Below, in pieces: positions 6,203-43,849 of a stretch of DNA of 64,000 nt (positions within the stretch are counted from its first letter, which is position 1; each line of letters starts with the position of its first letter). The DNA is from Ophelia neglecta. Its lineage: Eukaryota. Under the pieces are notes generated by a model. The model saw only the letters and a program-made list of their open reading frames with translations. It made no database searches and was not told where the DNA came from. The stretch is from positions 49,538,001-49,602,000 of the forward strand of contig OZ260667.1 in the NCBI GenBank assembly GCA_965285935.1, written 5' to 3'. Made by a program: the position numbers and the translations under genes.

Positions 6203-9200
6203 TCATCGAGTTGTGCACAGTTTTTTGATAATATTTAAATCGCCTTTCTTCCTTAGCAGGACCGCAGTAAGTAGAGCCGCACAGCCGCCCATGAATTGTA
6301 GAAGTCCGCTTACTAACAGACCCGCGCTGTAATTTCCGGTGACGTCAAACAGCCAGCCTAGAAATAGTTCCAAATTTGAATATAGTATTGGCCGCATGTA
6401 TTATACTGGGCCTACTTCTTGGTTCATATTTCAAAAGAAAGTTGTTACAAAACTAAGGAAGTTTGCAACCTTATGGGCTATAGACCCATCGCTGATATAT
6501 CTCGACAAGATATATCAGTGATAGGCCCACGGGCCTCAAGAGGGATTCGAAATTTGTAAATCGTAAGGCTTACTATAGTTTACCTGACAGTAAGTTGGCA
6601 CAGACCCTGCCTGTTCCCTGTACTAGTAGTACCCATGACATTCCAAGAGGTAGCCTCTCCACACCAATCAAGGATACTACTACAGTGGGCTGTATACCCT
6701 GGCAAATACCTGAAAAATGAAATTAGTAGAGTTAATTTTCTGGCACTTTAAAAGAGCCTGTTGTTAACAAAATAGGTTTAATTCCGCAGGCCTACATACC
6801 AAAAAATATTCCATACGCGACACAGAAAGCGCCGTGCGCCCAAAAAACATGAGGGACGACTATTGAGACTGCCACTACTACTCCGGACATTGTGCAGGCG
6901 ATCCCATTTAGAGGACATGGCTCGATCAACTTTGCTATCACACCGGAAATGCCTCGCCCCGTGATCCCTGCGAATCCGATCAGGGAAGGCAAAAACGAGG
7001 CTTCGGTGGGGCTGACACCCACTACAATAGCTCGGGGAGTAGAACGGAGGTAGAAAGCGTCCATTGAGTACATCAAAGTCACTGAGGTTATTAGAAACAG
7101 CACAAAAGATGGCGACATAATACTGCGGTCGAAACAGTCTAGCAACTCTGCACAGCGCGGCTTTTGTTCTCTCCTTCCCTTAAATGTTTGAGAACTTAGC
7201 ACCGACGAAGTTGTTTTCATTTTAAACCCAAAACCATTTTCCTGGTGCTTCCACTTGGGAAGAGCTAACTTATCTGTCTTGGTGTCAGTAGTAGTACATG
7301 TAGTTGGTGAGATATGCACGCGTGGTAGGACCTTGGGAGTCCGGAACTTTGGCGGTGGTCTCATTAGTGCGACTGGCACAAACATTTGAACATTCGCCGC
7401 GCTAAGGGCCAGCATTGCTCCTCGCCAGCCATACGCGTCAATCAGCAAACGCGTTAAGGGGGAAAACGCGATTGCGAAGGTGCTGACCCCGGCGGACGCG
7501 ATCCCCGCGGCGATGGCGCGGCGTTTGACGAAGTATTGTTGTACTATGACGACAGTTGGAATGAAAGCCACCCCGGCCCCGGCTCCTGGAAATATATTGG
7601 AATTAAGTAACTTTATAATATGGAAACAATCATGAACACTCCAATGATATTCAAATCAAGTATTAAAGAACCAGTCTTATATCCTCAGTGGGGTAGTAAG
7701 AGAGATAGCCCTTTTCTTTGACCAGGGGGGGGTGGAGGGGAGAGGGGGAAAGGGGGGGGGGTAGGAGGGGTGAGGGGAGAAGGAGGGGTCACCTGTTGTT
7801 GCTAGTATTTCAAAGTTACGTTTCCTCTGGAAAAACTCCATCTCCCTCCCCCCTCAGCAAAAATTTCTGGTCCATCAAAGCAATGGTGATAATGATCTAT
7901 TCTCACTTCGTTACTGTCTAAATTTCAACGCCTTGAATTAATTTGTTTAATTGCATTGTTTGTTAATTGTTCGTTTAATGGCATTCAAAATAATTAATAC
8001 TTCAAATGTCATTTTTGACACAAAGCATGGTCTGTAGAAAAAAAAAACATGTATAGTGTAAATCCCTTGTCGCGAAATTGGATAAAATGTTTTGTAGGCC
8101 CATGTCCTGTTGGCCTTTAACCTCTAGACATGGCTGTGTGCCTTTTATCTATATAGGGTGATGTCCTGTAGGCCCATGTCACGTGGCCTATGTCCCCTAG
8201 GCCTGTGGGCCTTTGTTATGTAGGCCTTTGGCATGTAGACCTATGTCCTGTAGGCTATGTCCTTTAGGCCTATTACTGTGTCCTGTATGTTTATGTCTTG
8301 TAGGCCTATGTCCCCCAGGCCTGTGTCCGCAAGGCCTTAGGGCCTATGTCCTTGAGGCATATCCTGTCGGCCTATGCCATTTCCCTGAGTCGCCGTGCTT
8401 TCTTTTCCAAACCACTCCGTGTCATTATTCAACAACGAAATTCTCTGTCGAAAATATATAGTGAAATGTGAGGGGTGTTACTGCTCGGGAAAAGATGGTG
8501 TTCACAGTTTAAAGATTACCGGCAAGAATCCCGAAGGTCACCAAAAGACCCCACACGTCAGTGCAGAACGCTGCCGCCAGGTGTCCCACTGCAGCCAAGG
8601 TGACTCCCACGAGACAAATCTGACGACACCCATATCGTTTAGTGAGTGGTCCCCCTAGTAGTCCTACAGGGAAAATAAGCCATATATTAAAACATTGAAT
8701 TCACATCTGACCGTCCAACTTCGCGCGTGCCTAACTTCGCGCGCCTTAATTGAATCTCCTGCAATTTATTCAATACAGCCACGAATTGCCCCAGAAAAAC
8801 ATGTTTGTAGCTCTGATGATTATCTTTTGGACGGTACCATAAATGGCTCAGTGTATGTTTGTGGGAACGCTAGGGCCATTTTTTTAACTTGAAAATGAAC
8901 ATTATTTTGATTTCATTTTAACAAAGATCACATAAGTGGAAACGAATATTAGAAGAAGGCCCGTGAGACAGAAGGTAACAGATACATGCATGGAGGGTAT
9001 TATAAAGATCTTCTCTATATGCAGACACCCTCTCAATACAGACCACTGATACAAGAAAAATATGGTGCAGTGTATATGTAAAAATAACCTGTCTAAACAG
9101 ACCACCTCCATAATCAGACCAGTATTTTCTGACCCCTTGGTAGTTTAATTATCAGGTTTCGCTAATAATCTCGGCTATTGGTTGTGGAGTCAATGCGGAG

Positions 9201-17850: not shown

Positions 17851-20486
17851 TTAGGATTCCGGTGTCCAACTCTGAATATAAACCCTGGATATCCCTACTC
17901 GCAGAGTCACCAGAATGCAAAAAGGGCTCGAAGTAGGACCCATGCCTATATTCCAAAGATCCATTGGTCCGTTGGTCGGAAAGTCCATTGGTCCGAAAAT
18001 CCGTTGTTCCAACAAATATTCCTTATATGAGTGGCGATTTTAGTAGTAATGTGTGTGTGTGTGTCGGGGGGGGGGGGGGGGGGGGGCTTTTTCAGACACC
18101 TTTATGTTTCACCGTGATGTGAACGCGTCAGGGATAACCACCCTTATTCTTCTGTGTCTCAGGACATGGTATTTAATTTGTCCGTTCTTCGGGAACGAGA
18201 ACTCATTCTCTTTAATACACCAAAGTCCAGTTGGTTTGAAGGGGCAAAATTCACTGGCGTGTTTCTAATAAAATTGAATCCTTTCACTTCTAAACCTGTT
18301 TTTGTTCTCAACCATTGGAGGGAACCATGGAACAGACAAACGCGTTGAATTAAACCTACCTAGTCAAATATTCATTAGATTAACATAAAGCCCAAGTCAA
18401 CACTGGGCCAGACTAGGATTTAGGTAATCCCATAAACCAATATTTGGACAGTGATTCACTGTTGTTTTTGGTAAGGGATCGAGTTTCAAGCGCAAGTTTC
18501 TTCCAGTCTGTCATTATGTTCCAATAAAAGAAGAATTAATGTAACTCCCTCTATACGAAACTGGAGTTATTATGGAATAGTTACGGTAGACAGAAAAGGA
18601 ATACATTTATACTAGTAGACTCCGATTTTGGAGAGTGGTGCCTCGCCTGGTCTTGGAGACTACCAGTATCCGCGCAGACTAACGAAATATCTAATATGAA
18701 AAAGTCAAGAATAGGGTTATAGATACGATTTTATTGTCACTGGGCCATATAATATGGGGTCGGAGTGATGGACAAACTGTTTATACATTTACAAAAAACA
18801 TGGTCATTCACGGAATATAGGCCTACACCAAAAGCCGACTGAAAGGGCATACAGATAGATCGGGAGGCCGGTTAAAGATACATCATAATATTGATTGTAT
18901 AATTGTGAATTTGATATTTGTTATTATCAGACTACGCTTAAGGCAAGCAAAATCATTTATACAATAACAACAAATATATGACACAAAAAATCATAAAAAC
19001 CATCGTATATATGAACTGCAGTTATCATGGATATCTTTAAAATAATATTAATGCAATACCCCTTGTGGTTATCATTTACATGGTAAATTCACCGATAATA
19101 AACTCTCCTATGTACAAGGCTATTTGTCTTAAAGCGACTTCATGTATTAGATGTGTTGCGATTGTACCAGCCTGACGATAATAAACTCTCATATATGTAC
19201 AAGCGTCTACATGTATGGGGAGGTGCGGGAATTGTACCACCCTCACACAATTATGACTTCAAGCTGAAGCATACTTTCATAAAAAATGAATTTTATATGA
19301 AGATAAATTACTGTTATATATTACTGTGATTATTTGAATTTTCTTCTACACAAACGAAACATCAAACTTAAATTAAATTGAACATCACAATAACGTGCTT
19401 ACACCAAGCAGGCAAATGGTTCTTGATAAAACTCTCAAATGCGATCAATTTGCTTTCGTCCGATGATGTTTTCTGCATTGTATGTAGACTTGAAGACAAA
19501 AACCTGTCACAGACATTGAAGAATTTCAATAATACAGGCATCCTTGTTGGAGGGGTTTTAACCCCAGAGGGTGAAAGCAGCAGGTGGAGTATTCCATTTG
19601 GACTCCCTCTCCTGCCCTGACCCGCCCCAGTCTATATATATATGTATGTATGTATTTCATGTCATCCATTGAACGATATTTAGTTTAGTTAACTATAACA
19701 CAATGCCCACAATTTTCTCTATGAACTGTCCATATTTTGCCAAATCTAATAATTGTTGCACAACATTTTAACGGATTAAGCTTTGAGCTTACAAGTCGGC
19801 TAGTAAAGTGTAACGACCTCATCTTGTATTCCAAACGATGGCGTTGTTTTTTGTGTATCAAGCTCGTGGTCACTACCTCTGTCTGCGGAAATGCACTTTT
19901 TAATCTAGAAGCACCGTATTCCATGTGTCTTCATTTTACTGGGGATATAGGGGATGGGGAGGGACGACAAAGGGGTCCCAAGCCCATTTTCTTTCAGCGA
20001 GTTGACCCAGGGAGAAAATGGAGGGTGGAGGAAAGTGTCCCTCCCGGAGGGGGATGGGGGGTGTGTTCCCTACCAGGAGCGAGGGGGGGGGGGGCACATT
20101 TCATTTAAGATGGGAGCAAATCATAACAAAATCAATCGCTTATTAAAACTAGTGTATTGACTACAATGAATTCCTTCCTCCATGTCGCCATATCATTTAT
20201 ACAAGTGACTCCAATGATAAAGCATAGCCCAGCCACTTCTTTCAAATTTGGTTCATCCCTACAGTAGTTATTTAACGTTACTAACACCACTGCCTGGCAG
20301 ACACCAATGAGAGTCAACTCATTGTACGCAAGTGTTCAGCAGACAATGCTCATGTAAATAACGTTTTATCCAGCCCGTGAGTGCTATCCAGCCGCACAAT
20401 GTGATCACTATCCACTTTATTTATATTCAATTGTCCAGGGAGTAATACTTGATGAACGTTTCACTAGAACTACTGAGCAGTTAGTA

Positions 20487-21170
20487 TCACGAGCAAGAAA
20501 TCCACCTTGAGAGGAGATGTACGACACTGAACAGTAGTCCCAAATACACTACTACTGACGAACTCCTGTGGGAGTGGCTAGTACTGTATATTTTACTACT
20601 TCGTATCCCGTTACACTCACTTCTACCTATCCACCATTTGCGATAAAGACCATCCAAGTAACCGCTATCCTTGAGCATGCGCAGAGCCTTGTTAATTCTT
20701 TCCAAGTGGTCTGAATTTTTCTGGACAGCCAATGCGTAGCCGCGGTTTAGCAAAAAACGACCAACTGTCACAAGATCACATGGCTCGCGCATGGAAATGT
20801 ATTCCCCTATCGTGTTCGGTAAGACAAATCCGTACTTTTCTCGTCGCACCATCTCAATGCCTTCCTCATTTGTTGCAGTTAGAACCTTTGAACCTCGTTC
20901 GTCAAATCGTTGCATATGTCTCCACATCATTTTATATTCTGTTTCATTTGTCCTTTTGAAAGCGCGCAGGATCACTCCTCGGTCGAGCGTCCCATATTTG
21001 ATTTCTGATTGGTTGATAAGCTCATCGACGGAGCGTATTTTGACGGTGGCGCCGGCTGGCGCCTTTCGCAGTAGTACAGTGGCATGGACGGTCATGTAGG
21101 GTTCCGTGAAGTCTACCACGCTCGCTCGGTGTGACGTCACATACATCGGGGCGGCCGCCATTTCAGCTCT
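20487..21170 (-). CDS. Last exon of iGluR-LBD-only gene: end of S1, short linker, whole S2, hydrophobic C-terminal tail
   Basis: Acceptor TTTTCTCTAG|AGA at 21170; ORF track 20487-21161; AMPA/kainate-type motifs DFTEPYM, KYGTL, PCD, GYALA and KWW...EC. Confidence 0.92.
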   Translation of the reverse strand, partial: RAEMAAAPMYVTSHRASVVDFTEPYMTVHATVLLRKAPAGATVKIRSVDELINQSEIKYGTLDRGVILRAFKRTNETEYKMMWRHMQRFDERGSKVLTATNEEGIEMVRREKYGFVLPNTIGEYISMREPCDLVTVGRFLLNRGYALAVQKNSDHLERINKALRMLKDSGYLDGLYRKWWIGRSECNGIRSSKIYSTSHSHRSSSVVVYLGLLFSVVHLLSRWISCS

Positions 21171-24100
21171 CTAGAGAAAAGAAAGACAGTCACGTGATAA
21201 ATAAACACAGTACTGTTACGAGATGATGAACAACTCCACGAGTAGTTAGACATTTAAAATTTGAACTGTGAAATTGAATTTAACATCTGTGCTTTTTTCT
21301 TACCATCACATATTATCTGAACTTACATTAATGTCCTTAATTTTTAAAATCTATTTTAACCTAGAATAGCCGTAAAAATGCAATTTATTTGATTAATTGA
21401 TTCCTCATATTTAGAAGAGTTTCATAAATATGAATTTGAAAACGAAAACAAAGTGAACATAAATTCAGTTCTGTTATAATATATAATATAGTATACCAGG
21501 CATATAAATTGTTCAATTCAAGTTGGGTACATTTAAAAATATGAAGTTAAAACCCATTGGCCTAGGCGCATTTTTGGTTCCTCTGTGTAGGCATACAGTA
21601 CAGTAAAGCCGACCAATCAGCGATGCGCTTCTTCTGCACTGTGGTGTTGCTGCCTCCACAGGTAGCAGGTGGAGCACGGCCATCCAATATACAATATATA
21701 TCCAACAAAAATATGTGGCGCTTTTCTCATATACACGTCGACTATAGAGGTGAAGGCTTATATCTGTGAAAAGGCAATTTAACTGGATTTCAACCATGAT
21801 TTGATATTATACATCTCATAAAATTAGCTTCGTTTAGCAAATATATACCGTTGCGCTTAAATGTGTTTTCTGTTTACCAAACAACAGGTAAAAAAGGCGA
21901 ATATTTTAGGCCAATGAGATTTTCCAAATCTAGCGGCGGCTGCATAAACAAGAATATTTCTCATTAACCTATTGTGTTCATATGACGGAATTTAATGAAT
22001 TTGATTCCAATTCCAAGCAAAACTTTGTAAACCAACTTGACACCTCTTGGTAATATCACTCCAAAATATGACACGTTTGCTGTGATTTTGTTGCAGTTCT
22101 CTTGTAAATTGCATGTTTTGTGGAGATGTAACATTACCTTATAACGTATTGTTTTAAAATCTTCTTCTGCCAACTATATTTAACCTTTTTATTGTTCAAT
22201 AAATATATCCGTTGTCGGCGGCTCTTTACCGAACTTTTCCAAAGGACATTTTATTATTACATCTGCTGCGCCGTGGAGTAAAGTTGGTTGGCAAATTTGG
22301 GCGGACTGTTAAGACTGTTTACTAGTATTTCTGTGATTTACTAGTTCCAAGCCTATTAGTGCATTTTAGATACACACATATACGCGTTTCATCTCGACTT
22401 AAGTATAAATTACTCCACATCGGTTCCCAAAATTAACCATTATATATATTTTTTTTTTNNNNNNNNNNNNNNNNNNNNNNNNNNNNNNNNNNNNNNNNNN
22501 NNNNNNNNNNNNNNNNNNNNNNNNNNNNNNNNNNNNNNNNNNNNNNNNNNNNNNNNNNNNNNNNNNNNNNNNNNNNNNNNNNNNNNNNNNNNNNNNNNNN
22601 NNNNNNNNNNNNNNNNNNNNNNNNNNNNNNNNNNNNNNNNNNNNNNNTCAATAATTTCGTTTCTATATTAACAGGACATCACGCCCTGAAATAAAATATC
22701 GCCATTCTATCAAAGCAATCGATCCTATACAGGTGTAGTTTATCACAGGTAAAAAGGCGAATATTTCAGGCCAATGAGATTTTCCAAATCTAGCGGCGGC
22801 TGCATAAACAGGAATATTTCTCATTAACCTATTGTGTTCATATGACGGAATTTAATGAATTTTATTCCAATTTCAAGCAAAACTTTGTAAACCAACTTGA
22901 CACCTCTTGGTAATATCACAGACGTGTGTAGTTTATCACTGCACTGAGTTTCAGAGACATTAAGCAAAACAACTGCATGATCACCATGGGCGGTAAATCT
23001 ATGGTTCTTATTAACAGAAAGAAGATCACAGGGTAGATAGTGTTACGAATTATTAATCAACGATACCTCGATAAACATGCTTGGAATTCATATCATGTGC
23101 CTGATATTCCACTTATATTTCTCACACAATTTAAAAAGCAAGCTCGAAAACTAGGATACACGTTATTTGAATGCGTCTTAATCAAATGTAGGCACTGTCA
23201 TTTTTTCATGAACATAACACCTTGATCTGGCTGTAGTCAGAATCCGTGAAAAGACCATCTCTTTCAAAATGTGGTTCTCAAAACTAAACTACTCTTTATT
23301 TAATTAAATTCATGCATGAATGTATTTATGCAGTTGGCATTTTACATCTTGACATATACTTAATACTATCATGTTGTTAAATGGTTACCCGGCCTACATA
23401 GCTTTTTTTCGTCAGGACAAAATACCAATTAACAGATTAATACACGACTTGAGCAAACTTGGTCGAATTACTTTACATTACCCGTCTAAACTTTCACCAA
23501 TGGTCTTCTCTAAAAAGCCGGGTTATTGGAACGAAAAACGCTTATATTTCAAGGAATAAAATCTCCTTGGGCACACAAGCTTAATCATTTGAGGCGTTAA
23601 TGTCATAAATAAATCATCGCTTGTATCTACTCAACTAGCTGGCGCTTTATGACGCCTAGATGGCGCTCTATGACGCCTAGCTGGCGCGTTATGACGCCTA
23701 CCTGGCGCGCTATGACGCCTACCTGGCGCTCTAAGACGCCTAGCTGGTGCTCTATGGCGCCTAGCTTGTGCTCTATGACGCCTAGCTGGTGCTCTATGAC
23801 GCCTAGCTGGCACTCTTTGATGCCTAGTTGGCGCTGTATGACGCCTAGCTTGTGCTCTATGACGCCTAGCAGAGGCTCTTTCACGCCTAGCTGGCGCTAT
23901 ATGACGCCTAGATGACGCTCTATGACGCGGAGCTGGGGCTCTATGACGCCTAGCTGGTGCTCTATGACGCCTAGCTGGTGCTCTATGACGCCTAGCTGGC
24001 ACTCTAAGGCGCCTAGTTGGCGCTCTATGACGCCTAGCTTGCGCTCTATGACGCCTTGCTGGGGCTCTATGAAGCCTAGCTGGTGCTATATGACGCCTAG

Positions 24101-27100
24101 CTGGCGCTCTATGACGCCTCGCTGGCGCACTATTACGCCTAGCTGGTGTTCTATGACGCCTAGCTGGCACTCTTTGACGCCTAGTTTGCGCTCTATGACG
24201 CCTGGCTCGCGCTCTATGACGCCTAGCTGGGGCTCTATGACGCCTAGCTGCTGCTCTATGACGCCTAGCAGCTGCTCTATGATGCCTAGCTGGTGCTCTA
24301 TGACGCCTAACTGGTGCTCTATGACGCCTAGCTGGCACTCTTTGACGCCTAGTTGGCGCTCTATGACGCCTAGCTTGCGCTCTATGACGCCTAGCTGGTG
24401 TTCTATGACGCCTAGCTGGATCTCTATGACGCCTAGCTTGCGCTCCATGACGCCTAGCTGGGGCTCTATGACACCTAGCTGGTGCTCTATGACGCCTAGC
24501 TGGCGCTCTATGACGCCTAGCTGGCGCTCTATGACGCCTTGTTTGCGCTCTTTGACGCCTAGCTTCGGCTCACTGACTCCTAACAGACGCCCTATGACGC
24601 CTAGCTGGTGCTCTATGACGCCTAGCTGCGCTCTATGACGCCTAGCTGGTGCTCTATGACGCCTAGCTGGTGCTCTATGACGCCTAGCTGGGGCTCTTTG
24701 ACGTCTAGCTGGCACTCTTTGATACCTAGTTGGCGCTCCATGACGCCTAGCTGGGGCTCTTTTACGCCAAGCTGGCGCTCTATGACGCCGAGCTGGTGCT
24801 CTTTGACGCGTAGCTGCTGCTCTATGACGCCTAGCTTGCGCTCCATGACGCCGAGCTGGGGCTCTATGACACCTAGCTGGTGCTCTATGACGCCAAGCTG
24901 GTGCTCTATGACGCCTAGCTGGCGCTCTATGACGCCTAGCTGGTGCTTTATGACGCCTAGCTGGTGCTCTATGACGCCTAGCTGGCGCTCTATGACACCT
25001 AGCTGGTGCTCTATGACTCCTAGCTGGTGCTCTATGACGCCTAGCTGGTGCTCTATGACACCTAGCTGGCGCTCTATGACGCCTAGCTGGTGCTCTATGA
25101 CGCCTAGCTGGCGCTCTATGACGCCTAGCTGGTGCTCTATGACGCCTAGCTGGTGCTCTATGACGCCTAGCTGGCGCTCTATGACGCCTAGCTGGTGCTC
25201 TATGACGCCTAGCTGGTGCTCTATGACGCCTAGCTGGTGCTCTATGACGCCTAGCTGGTGCTCTATGACGCCTAGCAGGTGCTCTATGACGCCTAGCTGG
25301 TTCTCTATGATGCCTAGCTGGATCTCTATGACGCCTAGTTGGTGCTCTATGACGCCTAGCTGGCGCTCTATGACGCCTAGCTGGTGCTCTATGACGCCTA
25401 GCTGGTGCTCTATGACGCCTAGCTGGTGTTCTATGACGCCTAACTGATGCTCTATGACGCCTAGCTGGTGCTCTATGACGCCTAGCTGGTGCTCTATGAC
25501 GCCTTGCTAGTGCTTTATGACGCCTAGCTGGCGCCTTATTACTTTTAACAGAGTTGTATGACGCCTAGCTTGGGCCCTATGACGCTCTTTGAGGCCTCAA
25601 TGGCGCTCTATGACGCCTAACTGTCGCTCTATGGCGTCTAACTAGCGCTCTATGGCGCCTTCCTCTACATAAATAGAGTCAGTGAGCTTTCTGAGGTGGG
25701 ATTTCTACCATTGTGGCGTCCATGAGAACTTGCAGAGAAAATACTAATATTTACTTTACGAAAAAGAGCCTTCAGTTGCGGAGACCAAGCCACCTAACTT
25801 CCTTAACAATGCATTATTCCGGTCACGTGATCGAAGCTGGCGGCGATCGGTTGAGATATTTAGGCTGTCAGTTAAGTCTAAACGTTGCTTTTATGAAGGA
25901 AAAGCATGTCATCGCGTTTTTTACATTCAAACTTTGATTAATATGGTACACGTCTGACGTTTTCGTCTTAGCGAATTAATTATAGTTCCTTATCTTCCAC
26001 GATACTTATAAAAGCATTATCATATTTAATAGACCCAGTCTTTGGACTAAAACGAAGTCTGTGCCAACCAATTTTCGCATTAAACAACTAACAAAAGTCG
26101 CCTCCGTGAAAAGCCTTTGCCATTCAGACAAAAACCTTTCCTATCAATATATATATAGGGTTATTTACACCAACGTCGTAATAAATAGGTCTAGGATCTT
26201 CCTTTTCCGGTTTATACTATAATTAGATTAGTTATCCGCCATGCCACTAGGCCAATCCACTCTGATGAGCTTCCCAGTGCACATTTTAAGATGATATTGA
26301 TTTTGCTGAAGCACCTCGTTAATTTTTTATAGCCATGTCGATCTCGGTTAAGACTGATGTCTTATTTCTTATTACTCCCTGGTTCTCCTGATCCTGGAAA
26401 TAAATTGGTAATGAACACCCTCAAAATAGTGTAGAACTTGGATACGGACACCTGCCGGATGTAGGGAACGGTGGGGTGCCCGGGGTAAGTGGCTGGAGGT
26501 GTCGAGGGTCCAGACTACCGCTGTCTTTACACACGTTCCTGCTGGTAATTTCTATTGGTCGTCTGGGGTGGTACCTCTTCCGAGACTGAGGTCTTAGCTC
26601 CCACCCCTCTCTCTCCACCACCTTTCTGGGTGGAGTTATCACCCCCATCCTCATAGTGAAAACAGACACAATTTAATATTCGAAATTTAACTCTTTAGCT
26701 GGAGGCGTCGAGAGTGCTTACTTCCACAGTCCTCACATACATTCCTGCCGGCAAATTCTATTTGGCTTCTGGGCGGTTGCCTCAAATGGAAGTTCTAAAC
26801 CGCTCCCCATCCCTTTTCTGGGAAGCTTTATCATCCCCTTACCCTCAATGGTTCCATAATTGCAGACACAATTATGGAACTTTAACTGTCTTTTTTTTTA
26901 TTGCCAAATTAACTCCCGGCTGATAAAAATAATAAGCCGTGGGAAGACTACCAGTGTCAGCCGAGCACGGGTTTACCCAAATACACCCACGGTCTGTGGT
27001 CCTACAGCAGACATTTAAGTCTAATCTGTGATCGACCATTTTATTAAGTATTTTTGAAATTAACTTGGTATACCAAATGATAGGAATTGAAAACGTGGGT

Positions 27101-29648
27101 GGGGGGGTGGGGGGGTGGGGTGGCGTCTGGTGAGGAGGTCAGCTAGTCACAATTATGCCATTCATTTTTCTACTTCGAATCTACTTACTCTGGAGTACGG
27201 CACAATGCCAGTTTAAGATTGTACGATGATATCAAGGTACGACGCATGTACATCACACGGTGTATCAATCACTGGCATGCATTACACTAGGGAGAAAGCA
27301 CGTGGTAGAGGTCGCTCGAGGAGACCAAAACAGGTTAGGTTCATTTACCGTCCAAACAACCAACGAGCCATGCTTTCTCTATCTGAAGGCTCCCTGCCCG
27401 CGGTTCACTACTTCTAGAACTACATGATCTTGAAGGGGAGAGATAGCGGCGGGTGCAAAATATACTGTACTACACAATGTCCATGTAGAAATAGGTCACC
27501 GGCAGCCTTGTGCCATCACCACAGCAAATTAACTACGGTTAGGCTACAAATATTATGGTTATAATGATACTGAATGTGTTTTTACCATGACTTTCACTAG
27601 CGCAAATCAATATATATTAATGTTTCATCAATGTAGTGCATAGAACCTTGTCGACTTGCTCGATTTGATCATTTCAACGTATTGTTTGTTGGCACAAAGC
27701 AATCAGTTGGCTTTGATTTTTAAATATTCACTAGACTAAGATCGTGCAGATTTCCCACAGCCACATGGATCGATGGGGTGGCATTGTTTTCCGTATAAAA
27801 AGAACGAGTTTATAAAGTAGTATTTTTTTCCAATCATGACAAAGCAATTCGTTGCCATTGCGTCTCTTGACTGTAAAATAATTTATCATAAACCGTATCA
27901 ATATTTAGCCAAATACAGTGAAACCTGCCTTAAAGACCACCTCTATTATCAGACCAACTGCCAATTAAGACCACTGATATGACGACCATGTTACATACTT
28001 ACTATGTTAAATAACCTGTCTAAACATACCACCTCCGAAATCAGACCAGTATTTTCTAGTCCCTTTGGTGGTCTTAATGGACAGGTTTCATTGTAATCAA
28101 ATTATTTCCTATAGTTAACTTCCACGGATTTTCTGCCTACTCACCCCTGACAGCAGTTCGCCGACCATGCCATCCCAGGTGCCGTCTGCCTGTCGGTATC
28201 CATAGCTACCGTCTGCCACGTGCGTTAGCTGGTACCGAAATCCGGCTATCTGTGAAAGCTTGTCGACAAGGTCGGCTACAAAACCAACGTACGGACGCTC
28301 GGAGGACGTCGTCTTGTTGTTGTAATCCCAGTTTCGCATTAAATACGGCTCAACCTGGTAAATGGTTAGAAACGGGTTACGAAGGTACAATTTCAATTTG
28401 CGCTACTCCAAATTGATCCGCAACATTCATTCAAACAGTGAGAGTAAAAAATGATAATATGGAGCGTGATAAGTTCAGCAGAACAGGAAGGCAAAGGTGT
28501 GAGACAGGTTTGCAAATATTAATCCAATGAGATGGACAATTTTGTCTAAACTTACATTTCATGCAAGTCTTAATGGAGCGATAATTATGTCATGGGCATG
28601 CAGTTATTTACTGGAAGGCGGGTGGGGGTGGGGTTGATGGGCAATACACCATTGTGGGAAGGTTACTATATACATTATAAGAAATGTATATACCCAGATG
28701 CTGGAATCGAGGCCCTCGGTCGCAAGGAGTTAACCGCGGTAATCATATGCTAATGAGCTGCGAATCGGGCCGCACATGCGCAGAAGTGTCCGGACGAGCC
28801 AATTTGTAAACAAACAGCCCCATCAATGGGAGCCCCAGCAATGCGGAATAGCCAGAGAAAACTTTTGTATATTTTCTGCGCGGATAATGATTGAACATGG
28901 AAACAACTCATCAATAATACACCGGGAAGAAATGTTGACAGGAGTCTTGTTGATTATTGATGACAAGCTGCGATACAAAGAGGTTTTTTCGTTACAAATG
29001 TCCACTGTCAGCAATCTGGCCAGCACGTGGTGTTGTCAGACCGTTACCGATACGTAAAGGGGCATTATGGTCTATTTGTGACGTATACAACAATACTTGG
29101 TGTTCAAAGTAGTCATAAATCACACATATTCATTAAACAAAATTGATTTTTGACCGAATATTTAGCGGAAGCAAGTACAATGCGAAATGCACATATCATT
29201 TTCGAATATGGCCCCTAACGACTGGATCTCCGAGGCTATCGCTGAAGATATCTGTGGGAAAATAACATCACCAACGCATGTGGCATGCTACTTGAGCAAT
29301 AATCCTACCTTCCGATTCTCTGTACATACATATTTTAAATAATGTTACATGTACCCTCCGACTACGCAAATTTATTGCTGTTAGTGTTTTGGTGACTGCT
29401 GTTCGCTCGTCTTCCTCGTTGTGAACACAATGGCGGCTCTCGAAATTCGCGCATAAAATCCCGCGTACAGCGTGATCTCGTGTGTGGGTAACCTATAACC
29501 ATTTGCGCAATGTGTAAGGAGGGACTGATTCCAATCTCTGGGTACATACATCTCTCAAATTAGTGAAAAAAGATTAATGCACGCACCAACACACTGGTTA
29601 CCCGCAGCTTGGAGCCACTCTCCCCATAACGAGTCGCTGCATCAACAT
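20487..29648 (-). CDS. iGluR ligand-binding-domain-only protein (S1 fused directly to S2, no ion channel, putative GPI anchor); first (signal peptide) exon not identified
   Basis: Exons 29648-29587 (xVDAATRYGESGSKLRVTSVL), 28354-28145 (VEPYLM...GFVADLVDKLSQIAGFRY...VADGSYG...WDGMVGELLSG) and 21170-20487 (RAEMAAAPMYVTSHRASVVDFTEPYM...IRSVDELINQSEIKYGTL...REPCDL...GYALAVQKNS...LYRKWWIGRSEC...). GT-AG introns, phases 0 and 0, about 318 codons with no internal stops. Confidence 0.9.
21884..22919. repeat. ~175-bp direct duplication (21884-22059 and 22745-22919) on either side of the assembly gap
   Basis: ACAGGTAAAAA(A)GGCGAATATT...CACCTCTTGGTAATATCAC occurs twice with a handful of substitutions. 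Confidence 0.9.
22459..22647. other. Assembly gap (189 N)
   Basis: Run of N. Confidence 1.
23634..25660. repeat. 21-bp minisatellite (CTCTATGACGCCTAGCTGGTG), ~95 units, intronic
   Basis: Uninterrupted tandem units. It accounts for all the MTPSWCS, ARRHRAP and LGVIEHQ repeat ORFs. Confidence 0.97.
27916..28093. mobile_element. MITE, CAGTGAAACCTG family
   Basis: TA|CAGTGAAACCTGCCTTAAAGACCACC ... GGTGGTCTTAATGGACAGGTTTCATTG|TA. Confidence 0.85.
28145..28354 (-). CDS. S1 exon of iGluR-LBD-only gene
   Basis: Acceptor TTTACCAG|GTT, donor GGG|GTGAGT; motifs EPYLM, GFVADL, DGSYG and WDGMVGEL. Confidence 0.92.
29587..29648 (-). CDS. 62-bp exon carrying the first beta-strand of S1 (KLRVTSVL)
   Basis: Strong acceptor TTTCCCTTTCAG|AT and donor TTG|GTGCGT. 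Joins in frame to give KLRVTSVLVEPYLM, comparable to GluA2 KTVVVTTILESPYVM. Confidence 0.8.
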
Positions 29649-30278
29649 CTGAAAGGGAAATCAAAAAGTCAAAATTCTGGACAGATTGTAGAAAAGTGTT
29701 GAGCAGAATACCTTTATTTAATGATGACAATTCGTCTCCACAGCTTAGACTTACTCAACAGACAATAGTCCATACAGATTCTGAGTCTAAGTAAAAACTA
29801 AATCATAAAGAATGAATGGCTCATCGCTTTGACAGGATGTTTGGAACAAAGGCTTAACTTGTTTTGTACATCAATTCACCGCGTCATTGTGGTTGAGCAT
29901 ATTTCCTCGACGGTGAACTTATCCATAACTTCTTGGACTTTTAACATATATAGAGAAACATGCTTTTTAGACACCCACTACATTGGGACAACCTTTCATT
30001 TCATAACCTTAATATGAAGACCATACTTTATCATTACAATCTGATAAAAACATCTAAGCAGACGTAAGAAGATCAGTATTTCACATTCCCATCGATGGTC
30101 TTAATTCACATCTTTCCATGTGTAGCTTGTAGCTGCCACAATTCTCCTTCCCCATTTAAGATGCTTTTTAAAGTTGTGTTAAATAGATAATGTTTTGAGT
30201 TTTATGTGAATTCTATTTTAATATAATAGAGGTGACAGATGCCCTGTCAATATTTTAATGATTATACCAGAGTATATA

Positions 30279-41734: not shown

Positions 41735-42925
41735 AAGTTTATTCAATCAATGAAACTAGTACAAGCTTGTACATTGAATATACACCGATATTTACCTATA
41801 TGAGATCGGGAGAGTAATATAAAGTCTACCGTTAGTACATAAAATACTGTTAGTACATAAAATAACCATAAACATTATAATAAACTGACATAAACTGACA
41901 TCACTGATTGCTATGAATTTTTAAGGCTTTGTCTATAAATATGGCTAAGTTATTTAAGGTTTTTTTCTAGCCACAGTTAACAAGAGAAATAAATTTATAC
42001 ATGTTAGGCCTCACTCTGAAGTATGGCGGAATATATTTTAGTCTAAGTTGCTGGTATGAGGTACATTCAAAGAGTACATGAAATTCATCTTCAATTTTAC
42101 CACAATGCTGGCAAAGTCTCTGATTATAAGGAACTGGATTCCTACCCCAGGAGCCCGCCTCTACTTTGAGTCTATGATTTCTGGTACGAAACTTACATAT
42201 GGTAGTTACACGGTTACTGGAGAGTCCAGCTGTGACATACTTTGGCAGACTAGTCAAACTAGTATCCTCAATTAAACCCTTGTAAAATATACCCTTAGAA
42301 GATGATGTTAAGTTTCCATCCATATTTTGCTGGGCTGTATCCAATAACCTCTGTTTTAACATAGAAATAAATAACACATCATTCCCCGGCCCCTGTGCGT
42401 CCCACACTTCGCCAAAGCCATATGTAAATAGTAAAGTTTTCACACTTTTTGTCCAGTTGGTAACACCATGGTTTTCCATAAATTGATACAATTTCTTCGT
42501 TAATCTATTACCGTCCATATGGAGTATTTTCAACCAATACTTGACAATTTTTACATATCTACCAACATACAAAGGTGCTCTTCCCATCTCCCTGTAAACA
42601 AACTCGTTCTTTGTATTACTACGTACACACATTAACCTATTACAAAATGCCAAGTGCACTTTCTCAATGTCCGGTGCTAAATGAAAACCCCTGGCTTCTG
42701 AACCATAGGAAAGAACAGGCAGTATAAGTTTGTCAAAAAGTTGAATTCGTTCCGTAATTGAAAATTTAAAACTATAAATGCACTGATAATATTTGAAAAG
42801 AGCTTTGCGTGCTTGTCCAGCAATAGTTTTTTGTGCCACAGTCCAGCTACCGTTTCCAGAAAAAGTAACACCTAAGTAACAGAAATGCTTTACAATCTCC
42901 AATTCAACACCATTATACATAAAAC
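41735..42925 (-). mobile_element. 5'-truncated LINE: 3' end of ORF2 plus 3' UTR
   Basis: 317-aa ORF: EIVKHFCYLGVTF (post-RT), LFDKLILPVLSYGSE, and FRTRNHRLKVEAG...RLCQHCGKIEDEFHVLFEC (C-terminal cysteine/histidine domain). Clade (CR1-like or RTE-X-like) not determined. Confidence 0.9.
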
Positions 42926-43849
42926 TACATGGATATAGAGAGAGAGAAATTGTTGCTTACAAAATAATATCTTAGACTGAGATATGTTGCCGGCTGGAAG
43001 ATTTTTCGACATTTTATGATCAGTGTGGATTCAGAATCAAGTCCAATAAGAACAAACGTTATATAACAGATGTCCAAGAGACATTGGATTCCCGCCAACC
43101 ATAAACGAATATACTTAATCTCGTAAAGTAACGCCGGCGTGGAGACTTGGCGGCCATGTTGATTCACTGGCCCGCCTGGTGGATTTCTCCTCTCACAAGA
43201 CGTAACGTTACTAGTGGTGGCACACATGTACACAGAACCAAAGAAGTGCATATGGTCCTAGGATTGCGCCATCTAGTGTACGCTGTGCTCAGGCCGATGA
43301 AAGAACTAGACATAGGGGAGGGATTGCCCCAGTCTATAGCATCGTGAACTTTCTGTATCGACAAGAGCGTGCTATTGCACTTTAAAAAGAAGTGCTATGC
43401 TATTTGCCCTGTCACCATAATATTTTGAAAGTATATACCCGCTTATAGCTAACACTATTGTATACTTTGAGCACATTTTGGGGTTGAACGCATTTCTTTT
43501 GCTGGTAATCAATTTCCAGCCTGGATCTACCATGATATTTCACTATGATCCATCATTTTATAGTTTTGCTCGATGGGGTGAGGGCGATATTAAGGTAGGT
43601 GGAAGCGAACTGTTAACACTTGCCTCGATTCCTTATCCCTGGATGTCATATAAATTTTGAGCTCAATGATATATTCTACGATTACCATGTTATATGTAGG
43701 CGATCTTACTTTAAATAAATACATTAAATACTCGAAGCATTCGCAATTCATAGGACAGCACATCAAAACACAGACCCCACATATAAACCGGCACTCTCAT
43801 CAGCATATACACCTACTATATCCTACACTACAATATTATAGTTAATTTT

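Follow-up and report, generated by a model that had tools for sequence, protein, structure and literature searches.

Channel-less ligand-binding proteins related to ionotropic glutamate receptors form a conserved, expanded and probably annelid-wide family

The gene described here lies on the minus strand of a 64,000-nucleotide stretch of the Ophelia neglecta genome (contig OZ260667.1 of assembly GCA_965285935.1, positions 49,538,001 to 49,602,000; hereafter the window, with all positions counted from its first letter). It is a member of a conserved, expanded and probably annelid-wide family of proteins that possess the ligand-binding domain (LBD) of ionotropic glutamate receptors (iGluRs) without the ion channel. 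In its third coding exon assigned with confidence, exon C, the frame passes without interruption from the end of the first half of the LBD, S1 (..VDFTEPYM..LLRK), through the linker APAGATVK into the start of the second half, S2 (IRSVDELINQSEIKYGTL..), and on to a TGA stop codon. We favour, with a probability of roughly 0.7, the reading that this annelid family derives from AMPA/kainate-type receptors by removal of the channel core and that its tethered S1S2 clamshell acts as a non-channel binding protein. We document the channel-less architecture, conservation, selection, fold and family size, and propose an anchoring mode, a ligand class and a function. The gene has the following features, all on the minus strand.

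29755..29806, minus strand: candidate first coding exon; ATG at 29806-29804, 17 codons plus one base, donor GTAAGT at 29754
29587..29648, minus strand: exon A, start of S1 (..SKLRVTSVL); acceptor ..tttcag in phase 1, donor gtgcgt; conserved in the orthologous locus L031 at 7913-7974
28145..28354, minus strand: exon B, central S1, 70 codons (VEPYLM..GELLSG); acceptor ..taccag, donor gtgagt; PF10613
20487..21170, minus strand: exon C, end of S1, linker, all of S2, stalk, hydrophobic tail and stop codon; acceptor ..ctctag
21039..21062, minus strand: natural S1-S2 linker APAGATVK, 8 residues, in the place of M1, the pore loop and M3
20562..20612, minus strand: Ser-rich stalk after the second LBD cysteine; low-confidence, probably disordered, with candidate glycosylphosphatidylinositol (GPI) attachment residues
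20493..20561, minus strand: C-terminal hydrophobic helix, residues 204-226, at the M4 position; GPI-signal-like or tail-anchor segment
20416..20421, minus strand: AATAAA polyadenylation signal, about 65 nt past the stop codon

Sequence, Pfam matches, alignment to solved structures and hydropathy agree that S1 runs through an eight-residue linker into S2 within one exon and that M1, the pore loop and M3 are missing, as an earlier note made from the DNA sequence had claimed. Pfam places positions 6-77 of Lig_chan-Glu_bd (PF10613) in exon B (E 1.5e-17) and positions 78-113 at the start of exon C. Because these coordinates abut at 77/78, S1 is continuous across the exon B-exon C intron. SBP_bac_3 (PF00497) matches exon C above threshold. 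Lig_chan (PF00060) has no Pfam match in the window exons, although the canonical control does match it. In a phmmer search against all chains of the Protein Data Bank (PDB), residues 1-186 of exon C are colinear with engineered GluA4, GluA2 and GluA3 S1S2 constructs, with E about 1e-34 and about 37% identity; the best matches include GluA4 3fas (8e-35) and GluA2 1ftj. The natural linker aligns at the position of the GT linker of the engineered AMPA receptor constructs, and full-length receptors in the PDB match exon C from residue 44 onwards only. Kyte-Doolittle scans find no membrane-type hydrophobic segment between S1 and S2, and the control receptors show M1, M3 and M4. In L016, a canonical paralogue from the same genome, M1, the pore loop and M3 with YTANLAAF lie inside the homologous exon, whose start is identical. 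We infer that the ancestral event would have been an in-frame deletion of roughly 113 codons within one exon, not exon skipping.

Exons A to C have standard acceptors and donors that can be read directly from the sequence, consistent with the good splice sites reported earlier, and their approximately 300 codons contain no stops and no frameshifts. Exon C comprises 227 codons including the stop (TGA at 20489-20487). Both cysteines of the LBD disulfide are retained in this copy, as the same note had stated, with codons at 20780-20778 and 20615-20613. Its claim of an intact frame holds only for exons A to C, the three that it covered; upstream of them, the best candidate for a first exon carries a TAG in frame. 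Exon A opens in phase 1, so the gene extends upstream of 29648, the start given in the note.

It is very improbable that the junction arose through an assembly error, or that an ordinary receptor gene has recently suffered a neutral deletion here. In favour of such an origin one may cite the assembly gap and the repeats at the locus. The exon B-exon C intron contains the following features:

22459..22647, no strand: assembly gap (run of N)
23635..25531, no strand: 21-nt minisatellite, about 90 copies, 87% matches

The junction itself is spanned by reads. Sampled 31-mers of 20300-21200 are 98-100% present in three sequencing runs of one sample, and a 1952-nt read-derived contig covering 20300-21937 crosses the junction with no indel or joint, so that the misassembly considered in the earlier note is not seen; these runs are perhaps the assembly's own source, and thus exclude an assembler error rather than supply independent confirmation in another individual. 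The gap falls within the 7-kb exon B-exon C intron and the reading frame is therefore unaffected. Since the Pfam coordinates of the two exons abut, no coding sequence has been lost in it. Equivalents of exons B and C are adjacent and in the same order in the orthologous L031, which comes from the assembly of a different species, and in the paralogues L003, L004 and L006, where the introns measure 0.35-4.4 kb. Two copies of a 169-nt direct repeat (98% identity; 21891-22059 and 22751-22919) border the gap. The read contigs break at the ends of this repeat and read depth is raised there, which suggests a dispersed repeat as the probable cause of the gap. Against both an artefact and a neutral deletion, the same junction is found with intact frames in 13 loci of this genome and in many other species, at 27-79% identity.

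A six-frame search of the 762-Mb genome with exon C identified at least 13 loci that share the S1-linker-S2 junction in a single open frame. The 12 loci besides that of the window (L002-L012 and L017) have 27-57% identity to exon C and leave no room for M1-M3. Twelve of the 13 are on contig C12 (10.0-49.6 Mb), and four, including the gene of the window, are found within 48.44-49.56 Mb. By contrast, none of the 48 Lig_chan (PF00060) matches in the genome is on C12; all are on C1, C2, C5, C7, C8 and C9. In a synteny comparison, the leucine-rich repeat gene that adjoins the orthologous locus L031 is not present in the window.

The family extends to other annelids. An exhaustive HMMER search covering 1.84 billion representative proteins returned 1940 matches, and among the 150 of these that were listed two classes are evident, namely proteins of about 200-373 aa aligned in one stretch through the junction, and proteins of 800-1000 aa aligned in two stretches, the best of which starts at residue 42-45. 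BLASTP matches to exon C were obtained for 215 retrieved homologues, and 147 of these align through the junction in a single stretch. Among the 147 are P0134 and seven proteins of more than 380 aa; a few of the latter, over 400 aa long, fall among canonical receptors in the tree. The further analysis of the family was limited to the 140 single-stretch proteins of at most 380 aa. P0134 was rejected as a natural channel-less protein, being an engineered AMPA receptor S1S2 construct with a GT linker that is nested among canonical receptors. It is a laboratory sequence within an environmental/genomic protein collection and can mislead searches for natural channel-less proteins. All named matches are annelid (Capitella teleta, Owenia fusiformis, Paralvinella palmiformis, Helobdella robusta, Ridgeia piscesae and Lamellibrachia satsuma), and the matching ESM Atlas cluster, with 147 members and without Lig_chan, is mostly annelid. 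Further word-indexed protein searches for wider taxonomic reach, with P0160 and a family profile, gave only a handful of matches, and a structural search of the ESM Atlas returned canonical receptors only. Public members of the family are labelled as hypothetical or 'Glu/Gly-binding domain-containing' proteins. The earlier note had proposed a search for orthologues with the same junction; homologues that share it are present in six named annelid genera in addition to the loci of this genome. Because the junction is shared across loci and annelid genera under purifying selection, we are dealing with a natural channel-less LBD and not with a fresh deletion. The earlier proposal of a naturally evolved protein is upheld in this respect, while its singular gene turns out to be one member of a large family.

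Since the exons of the window were searched and folded singly, full-length homologues from the databases stand in for the whole protein. Full-length members measure 310-373 aa and consist of a signal-peptide-like N-terminus, which is clear also by hydropathy, followed by S1, the linker, S2, a stalk rich in S, G, A and N, and a C-terminal hydrophobic stretch. The linker has 7-9 residues in 118 of 139 members. These proteins match PF10613 and PF00497 only; neither PF00060 nor PF01094, the family of the amino-terminal domain (ATD), is found, and the canonical control matches both. The Pfam search, one of the tests suggested previously for M1-M3, thus gives the same answer for the family as for the window exons. 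Several homologues come from contigs of 1.1-2.0 kb from sequencing runs or metatranscriptomes of other species, in which the open reading frames are uninterrupted at both genomic intron positions. The contigs carry untranslated regions, in one case with terminal AATAAA motifs, and are consistent with spliced mRNAs and hence with expression in those species.

The fold of the family is that of the isolated iGluR LBD. For a Capitella member with the family alignment, AlphaFold2 gave a mean predicted local distance difference test (pLDDT) score of 88.5, with values above 95 over residues 40-300 including the linker. The top Foldseek matches are isolated GluA2 and GluK1 S1S2 cores (target-normalised template modelling score, or TM, 0.90-0.92; root-mean-square deviation 2.0-2.8 Å). 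Exon C of the window was modelled with a mean pLDDT of 91.4; residues 1-185, including the linker, score 86-98, the stalk (residues 187-203) 47-76, and residues 204-226, which form a helix, 94-97. The comparison with GluA2 S1S2 that had been suggested earlier thus yields confident models and close structural matches. The two LBD cysteines are conserved in 140/140 and 137/140 members, and an N-x-S/T sequon in S2 in 99/140, which fits a luminal or extracellular location and passage through the secretory pathway.

Constraint is evident between orthologues and between paralogues. Exon B has 80% identity to its L031 counterpart, with proportions of nonsynonymous (pN) and synonymous (pS) differences of 0.10 and 0.61 and a corrected ratio of nonsynonymous to synonymous rates (dN/dS, omega) of about 0.09. 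Exon C has 79% identity and a dN of 0.185, its synonymous sites being saturated. Pairs of paralogues within the genome give omega values of 0.08-0.19. The dN/dS analysis named in the earlier note thus yields about 0.1, that is, purifying selection, and the low omega in both comparisons excludes a neutrally decaying relic at the level of the family.

The ligand pocket, mapped in GluA2 numbering through the phmmer alignment to PDB chains, is altered. In iGluRs, Arg485 binds the alpha-carboxylate of the ligand and Glu705 holds its alpha-amino group. The gene of the window keeps Pro478 and Arg485, and has Tyr for Thr480, Val/Ile for Ser654/Thr655 and Pro for Glu705. Among the 140 members, 123 rows have a residue at the column of Arg485, and 120 of these keep the arginine; position 705 is Pro in 98 members and Glu or Asp in 37. 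Two pocket types can be distinguished, R-[Y/F/L]-[I/L]-P, to which the gene of the window belongs, and a minority type of about 30 sequences, R-[T/S]-T-[E/D], which is the canonical amino-acid-binding set. Since the replacements are themselves conserved, the pocket looks retuned rather than decayed. Glutamate appears unlikely as the ligand of the window's subfamily, and the glutamate buffer suggested earlier is accordingly disfavoured, the alpha-amino contacts being replaced while R485 is kept. A carboxylate-bearing small molecule without an alpha-amino group, accommodated in a more hydrophobic cavity, would suit these pocket residues better.

After the second LBD cysteine (Cys773), family members continue for a median of 41.5 aa. 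In 128 of 136 members this tail contains a hydrophobic 12-mer (Kyte-Doolittle mean of at least 1.6) that ends a median of 5 aa from the C-terminus (interquartile range 3-8), preceded by a segment in which S, G, A and N abound. Otherwise the tails show hardly any sequence conservation across the family; what is maintained is the property and not the sequence. The hydrophobic helix ends 3-10 residues before the stop codon, which leaves no cytoplasmic domain. In a longer GluA2 construct the residues aligned to the stalk form the pre-M4 linker, which puts the hydrophobic tail at the M4 position; this tail is probably a remnant of M4. A classical GPI-attachment signal consists of small residues, a short spacer and a terminal hydrophobic stretch, with no cytoplasmic tail. 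The family tails resemble this pattern by a heuristic of hydropathy and residue composition. This suggests that the protein is likely to be membrane-tethered rather than free, with a GPI-attachment signal as the favoured anchor and a stub tail-anchor as the alternative.

Two members depart from this organization. P0170 from Owenia fusiformis (312 aa) carries a His-rich stretch at either end, lacks a hydrophobic tail and may be a soluble, metal-associated variant. P0181, from a JGI metatranscriptome contig of 1161 nt, is a 306-aa S1-linker-S2 protein that ends 10 residues past the second LBD cysteine, also without a hydrophobic tail. In the phylogenetic tree it groups with canonical receptors and may represent an independent, truly soluble channel-less case.

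In a tree built on S2 columns, canonical receptors form one clade (Shimodaira-Hasegawa-like approximate likelihood ratio test, SH-aLRT, 98) and the gene of the window falls within a channel-less clade of 53 rows (SH-aLRT 89). A single origin was tested on a 45-row subset of the 121-row tree, 24 of whose rows are channel-less; the subset omits own_L012, own_L017 and P0170 (long-branch), the 'LONG' rows, P0134, P0181 and many redundant rows. A tree in which the 24 channel-less rows are kept as one group exceeds the free-search tree by 17.9 log-likelihood units (approximately unbiased test, p-AU 0.755), and for this subset the test does not reject one origin. The lineage of Owenia branches early among the annelids, and the family therefore probably dates to the annelid stem.

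These observations can be combined as follows. In an ancestral AMPA/kainate-type iGluR gene the channel core (M1, pore loop and M3) would have been deleted within a single exon, with the ATD absent. The product would be a protein of the secretory pathway of about 320-350 aa, composed of a signal peptide, a bilobed S1S2 with its linker of 7-9 residues, the Ser-rich stalk and the hydrophobic segment at the M4 position, and this last segment would most likely tether the clamshell to the outer face of the membrane. The window's subfamily would bind a carboxylate-bearing ligand other than an alpha-amino acid. The protein may then serve as a non-channel binding receptor, co-receptor or cell-surface ligand sink, in the manner of GPI-anchored ligand-binding co-receptors. 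In a more specific version, which we put at slightly better than even odds, this is an old and expanded annelid family of natural 'S1S2' proteins in which the channel was lost, probably once in the annelid stem, the tether was kept and the pockets diversified, giving non-channel surface chemoreceptors or ligand sinks. In that version the R-T-T-E/D subfamily still looks amino-acid-binding and the larger one would have been retuned to another carboxylate.

Other roles have to be weighed against this one. Freely soluble secreted proteins that buffer or trap a transmitter or toxin, like the acetylcholine-binding protein (AChBP), would also combine a channel-less LBD with a signal peptide, and the tail would then have no anchoring role. 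The tail-less P0170 and P0181, and the roughly 30 of 140 members that keep the full amino-acid-binding set R-T-T-E/D, speak for such proteins. We nevertheless consider this improbable, since a terminal hydrophobic segment that persists in nearly all members despite very low sequence conservation argues for a function, and the alpha-amino contacts are lost in the window's subfamily. The AChBP analogy drawn in the earlier note accordingly survives as regards the channel-less binding domain and probably fails as regards free solubility. We also give little credence to the possibility that these proteins are accessory subunits, putatively docking onto canonical iGluR or ionotropic receptor (IR) channels by way of the LBD dimer interface together with an M4-like helix, and thereby modulating gating. 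In canonical receptors M4 packs against M1 and M3 of the neighbouring subunit, and a tail at the M4 position that is modelled as a 23-residue helix would be compatible with such docking. However, the tails are poorly conserved and often have 12-15 hydrophobic residues with polar interruptions, and the large and divergent set of paralogues looks more like a ligand-diversified family.

It is also conceivable that the copy in the window is disabled, as a pseudogene or null allele, while the rest of the family is functional. Upstream of exon A a single phase-compatible exon was found; it ends at 29755, and 106 nt separate its consensus GTAAGT donor from exon A. This candidate first exon (29806-29755) has 52 nt, is in phase 1 and fits exon A, and it equals a stretch of L031 (7792-7843) in length and phase, the donor there being only possible. 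Its third codon is TAG (29800-29798), versus TGG in L031. This TGG to TAG change would stop translation, and re-initiation at the next ATG would yield a protein without a signal peptide; from the alternative ATG at 29773-29771, only six residues precede the splice. In support of a disabled copy, the candidate exon corresponds to that of the orthologue in length, phase and position, and no other phase-compatible signal-peptide exon is found within 12 kb. On the other side, the peptides encoded by the two candidate first exons are hardly alignable and the exon model is tentative, other donors are possible in L031, and exons A to C, free of stops and frameshifts, look constrained relative to the orthologue. 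The TAG could reflect a null allele or young pseudogene, a sequencing error, a polymorphism or a wrong exon model. DNA alignment upstream of exon A with the L031 orthologue was uninformative as to the first exon, and inspection of the paralogous and other-species loci for a common first-exon structure gave no clear answer. On balance we regard disablement of this copy as unlikely, though it deserves to be taken seriously; the conclusion at the level of the family is unaffected by it.

Several observations count against a functional, tethered binding protein of annelid origin as we propose it. Besides the TAG at codon 3, a scan of the 12 kb upstream for an ATG followed by a hydrophobic stretch and a phase-2 donor, suited to an alternative acceptor at 29787/29786, found nothing convincing, and no RNA sequencing runs for Ophelia neglecta were found. 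The restriction to annelids is drawn from the few database matches that carry names, the ligand class from five pocket positions, and GPI anchoring from hydropathy and residue patterns. The 23-residue helix modelled by AlphaFold2 could equally span the membrane, and a few members, P0170 and P0181, are tail-less. The tree is unresolved at its base and does not demonstrate a single origin.

The favoured annelid family of tethered clamshells can be compared with several known systems. Engineered S1S2 cores (GluA2 S1S2J, 1ftj; GluA4, 3fas) have the same S1-linker-S2 boundaries, align colinearly and superimpose with the TM values given above. These cores were made in the laboratory, have a GT linker and lack a tail, whereas the annelid proteins are natural, are encoded by genes with introns and have a linker of 7-9 residues, a signal peptide, a hydrophobic tail and, in the window's subfamily, an altered pocket. 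With AMPA/kainate-type iGluRs (AKDF class) the family shares a homologous LBD, the disulfide, Arg485 and the exon start seen in the canonical paralogue. Unlike them it lacks the ATD, M1-pore-M3, SYTANLAAF and the cytoplasmic tail, and cannot form a channel. Variant IRs resemble it in the absence of an ATD, in divergent ligand contacts among which the arginine is often retained and in lineage-specific expansion of paralogues, but they keep the ion-channel domain, and the annelid family, being without PF00060, falls outside the IRs. Vertebrate kainate-binding proteins of frog and chick are likewise short iGluR relatives without an ATD; in contrast to the channel-less annelid proteins, they keep M1-M4. 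AChBP of molluscs and annelids is also the ligand-binding part of a ligand-gated channel turned into a channel-less protein. This likeness is one of analogy only, since AChBP has an unrelated fold (a Cys-loop beta-sandwich pentamer) and is freely soluble, whereas the annelid iGluR family has a terminal hydrophobic segment that is a putative anchor signal. Bacterial solute-binding proteins of family 3 (PF00497) share the type II periplasmic-binding-protein fold and the Pfam match. However, the annelid genes are spliced, their nearest solved relatives are AMPA receptors and their named relatives are all annelid. By these features the family would represent a secondary return to a stand-alone binding protein and not a bacterial gene.

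Full-text literature searches, which included the accessions of annotated Capitella and Helobdella members, returned no description of the family; most papers in subscription journals lie outside such searches, so this is absence of evidence only. Papers on annelid IRs and iGluRs do not mention channel-less proteins of this kind. Within mostly open full-text literature, the check for prior reports proposed in the earlier note thus comes out in its favour, and the family is apparently undescribed. Croset et al. 2010 (PMC2924276) defined iGluRs and IRs by PF10613 together with PF00060, Ramos-Vicente et al. 2018 retained a sequence only if at least four SYTANLAAF residues were conserved in it, and a 2025 phylogeny in Communications Biology, which included Capitella, removed sequences with fewer than two predicted transmembrane helices. 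Because the inclusion criteria of all three surveys would exclude the channel-less family, annelid 'iGluR-like' gene counts are incomplete.

Ligand-binding domains of iGluRs are otherwise known as parts of channels or as crystallography constructs. If our reading is correct, this family shows such a domain working alone at the cell surface, and raises the question of what a clamshell signals to without a pore. It would be a previously unrecognised class, the iGluR counterpart of AChBP, missed by surveys that discard sequences without the pore motif or transmembrane helices, and a second, independent case after AChBP in which a ligand-gated channel has yielded a binding protein. Structural studies and ligand discovery would also gain a supply of naturally stable S1S2 proteins whose pockets differ.

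Three further open frames or sources of open frames were noted in the window. The 21-nt minisatellite in the exon B-exon C intron gives long spurious open frames on both strands. A 329-aa open frame at 41970-42956 (minus strand) has no Pfam match and by eye resembles the tail of a retroelement open reading frame. Downstream of the channel-less gene, a 287-aa open frame at 6795-7655 (minus strand) matches Pfam MFS_1 with an E-value of 5.5e-16 and is probably an exon of a major-facilitator transporter gene.

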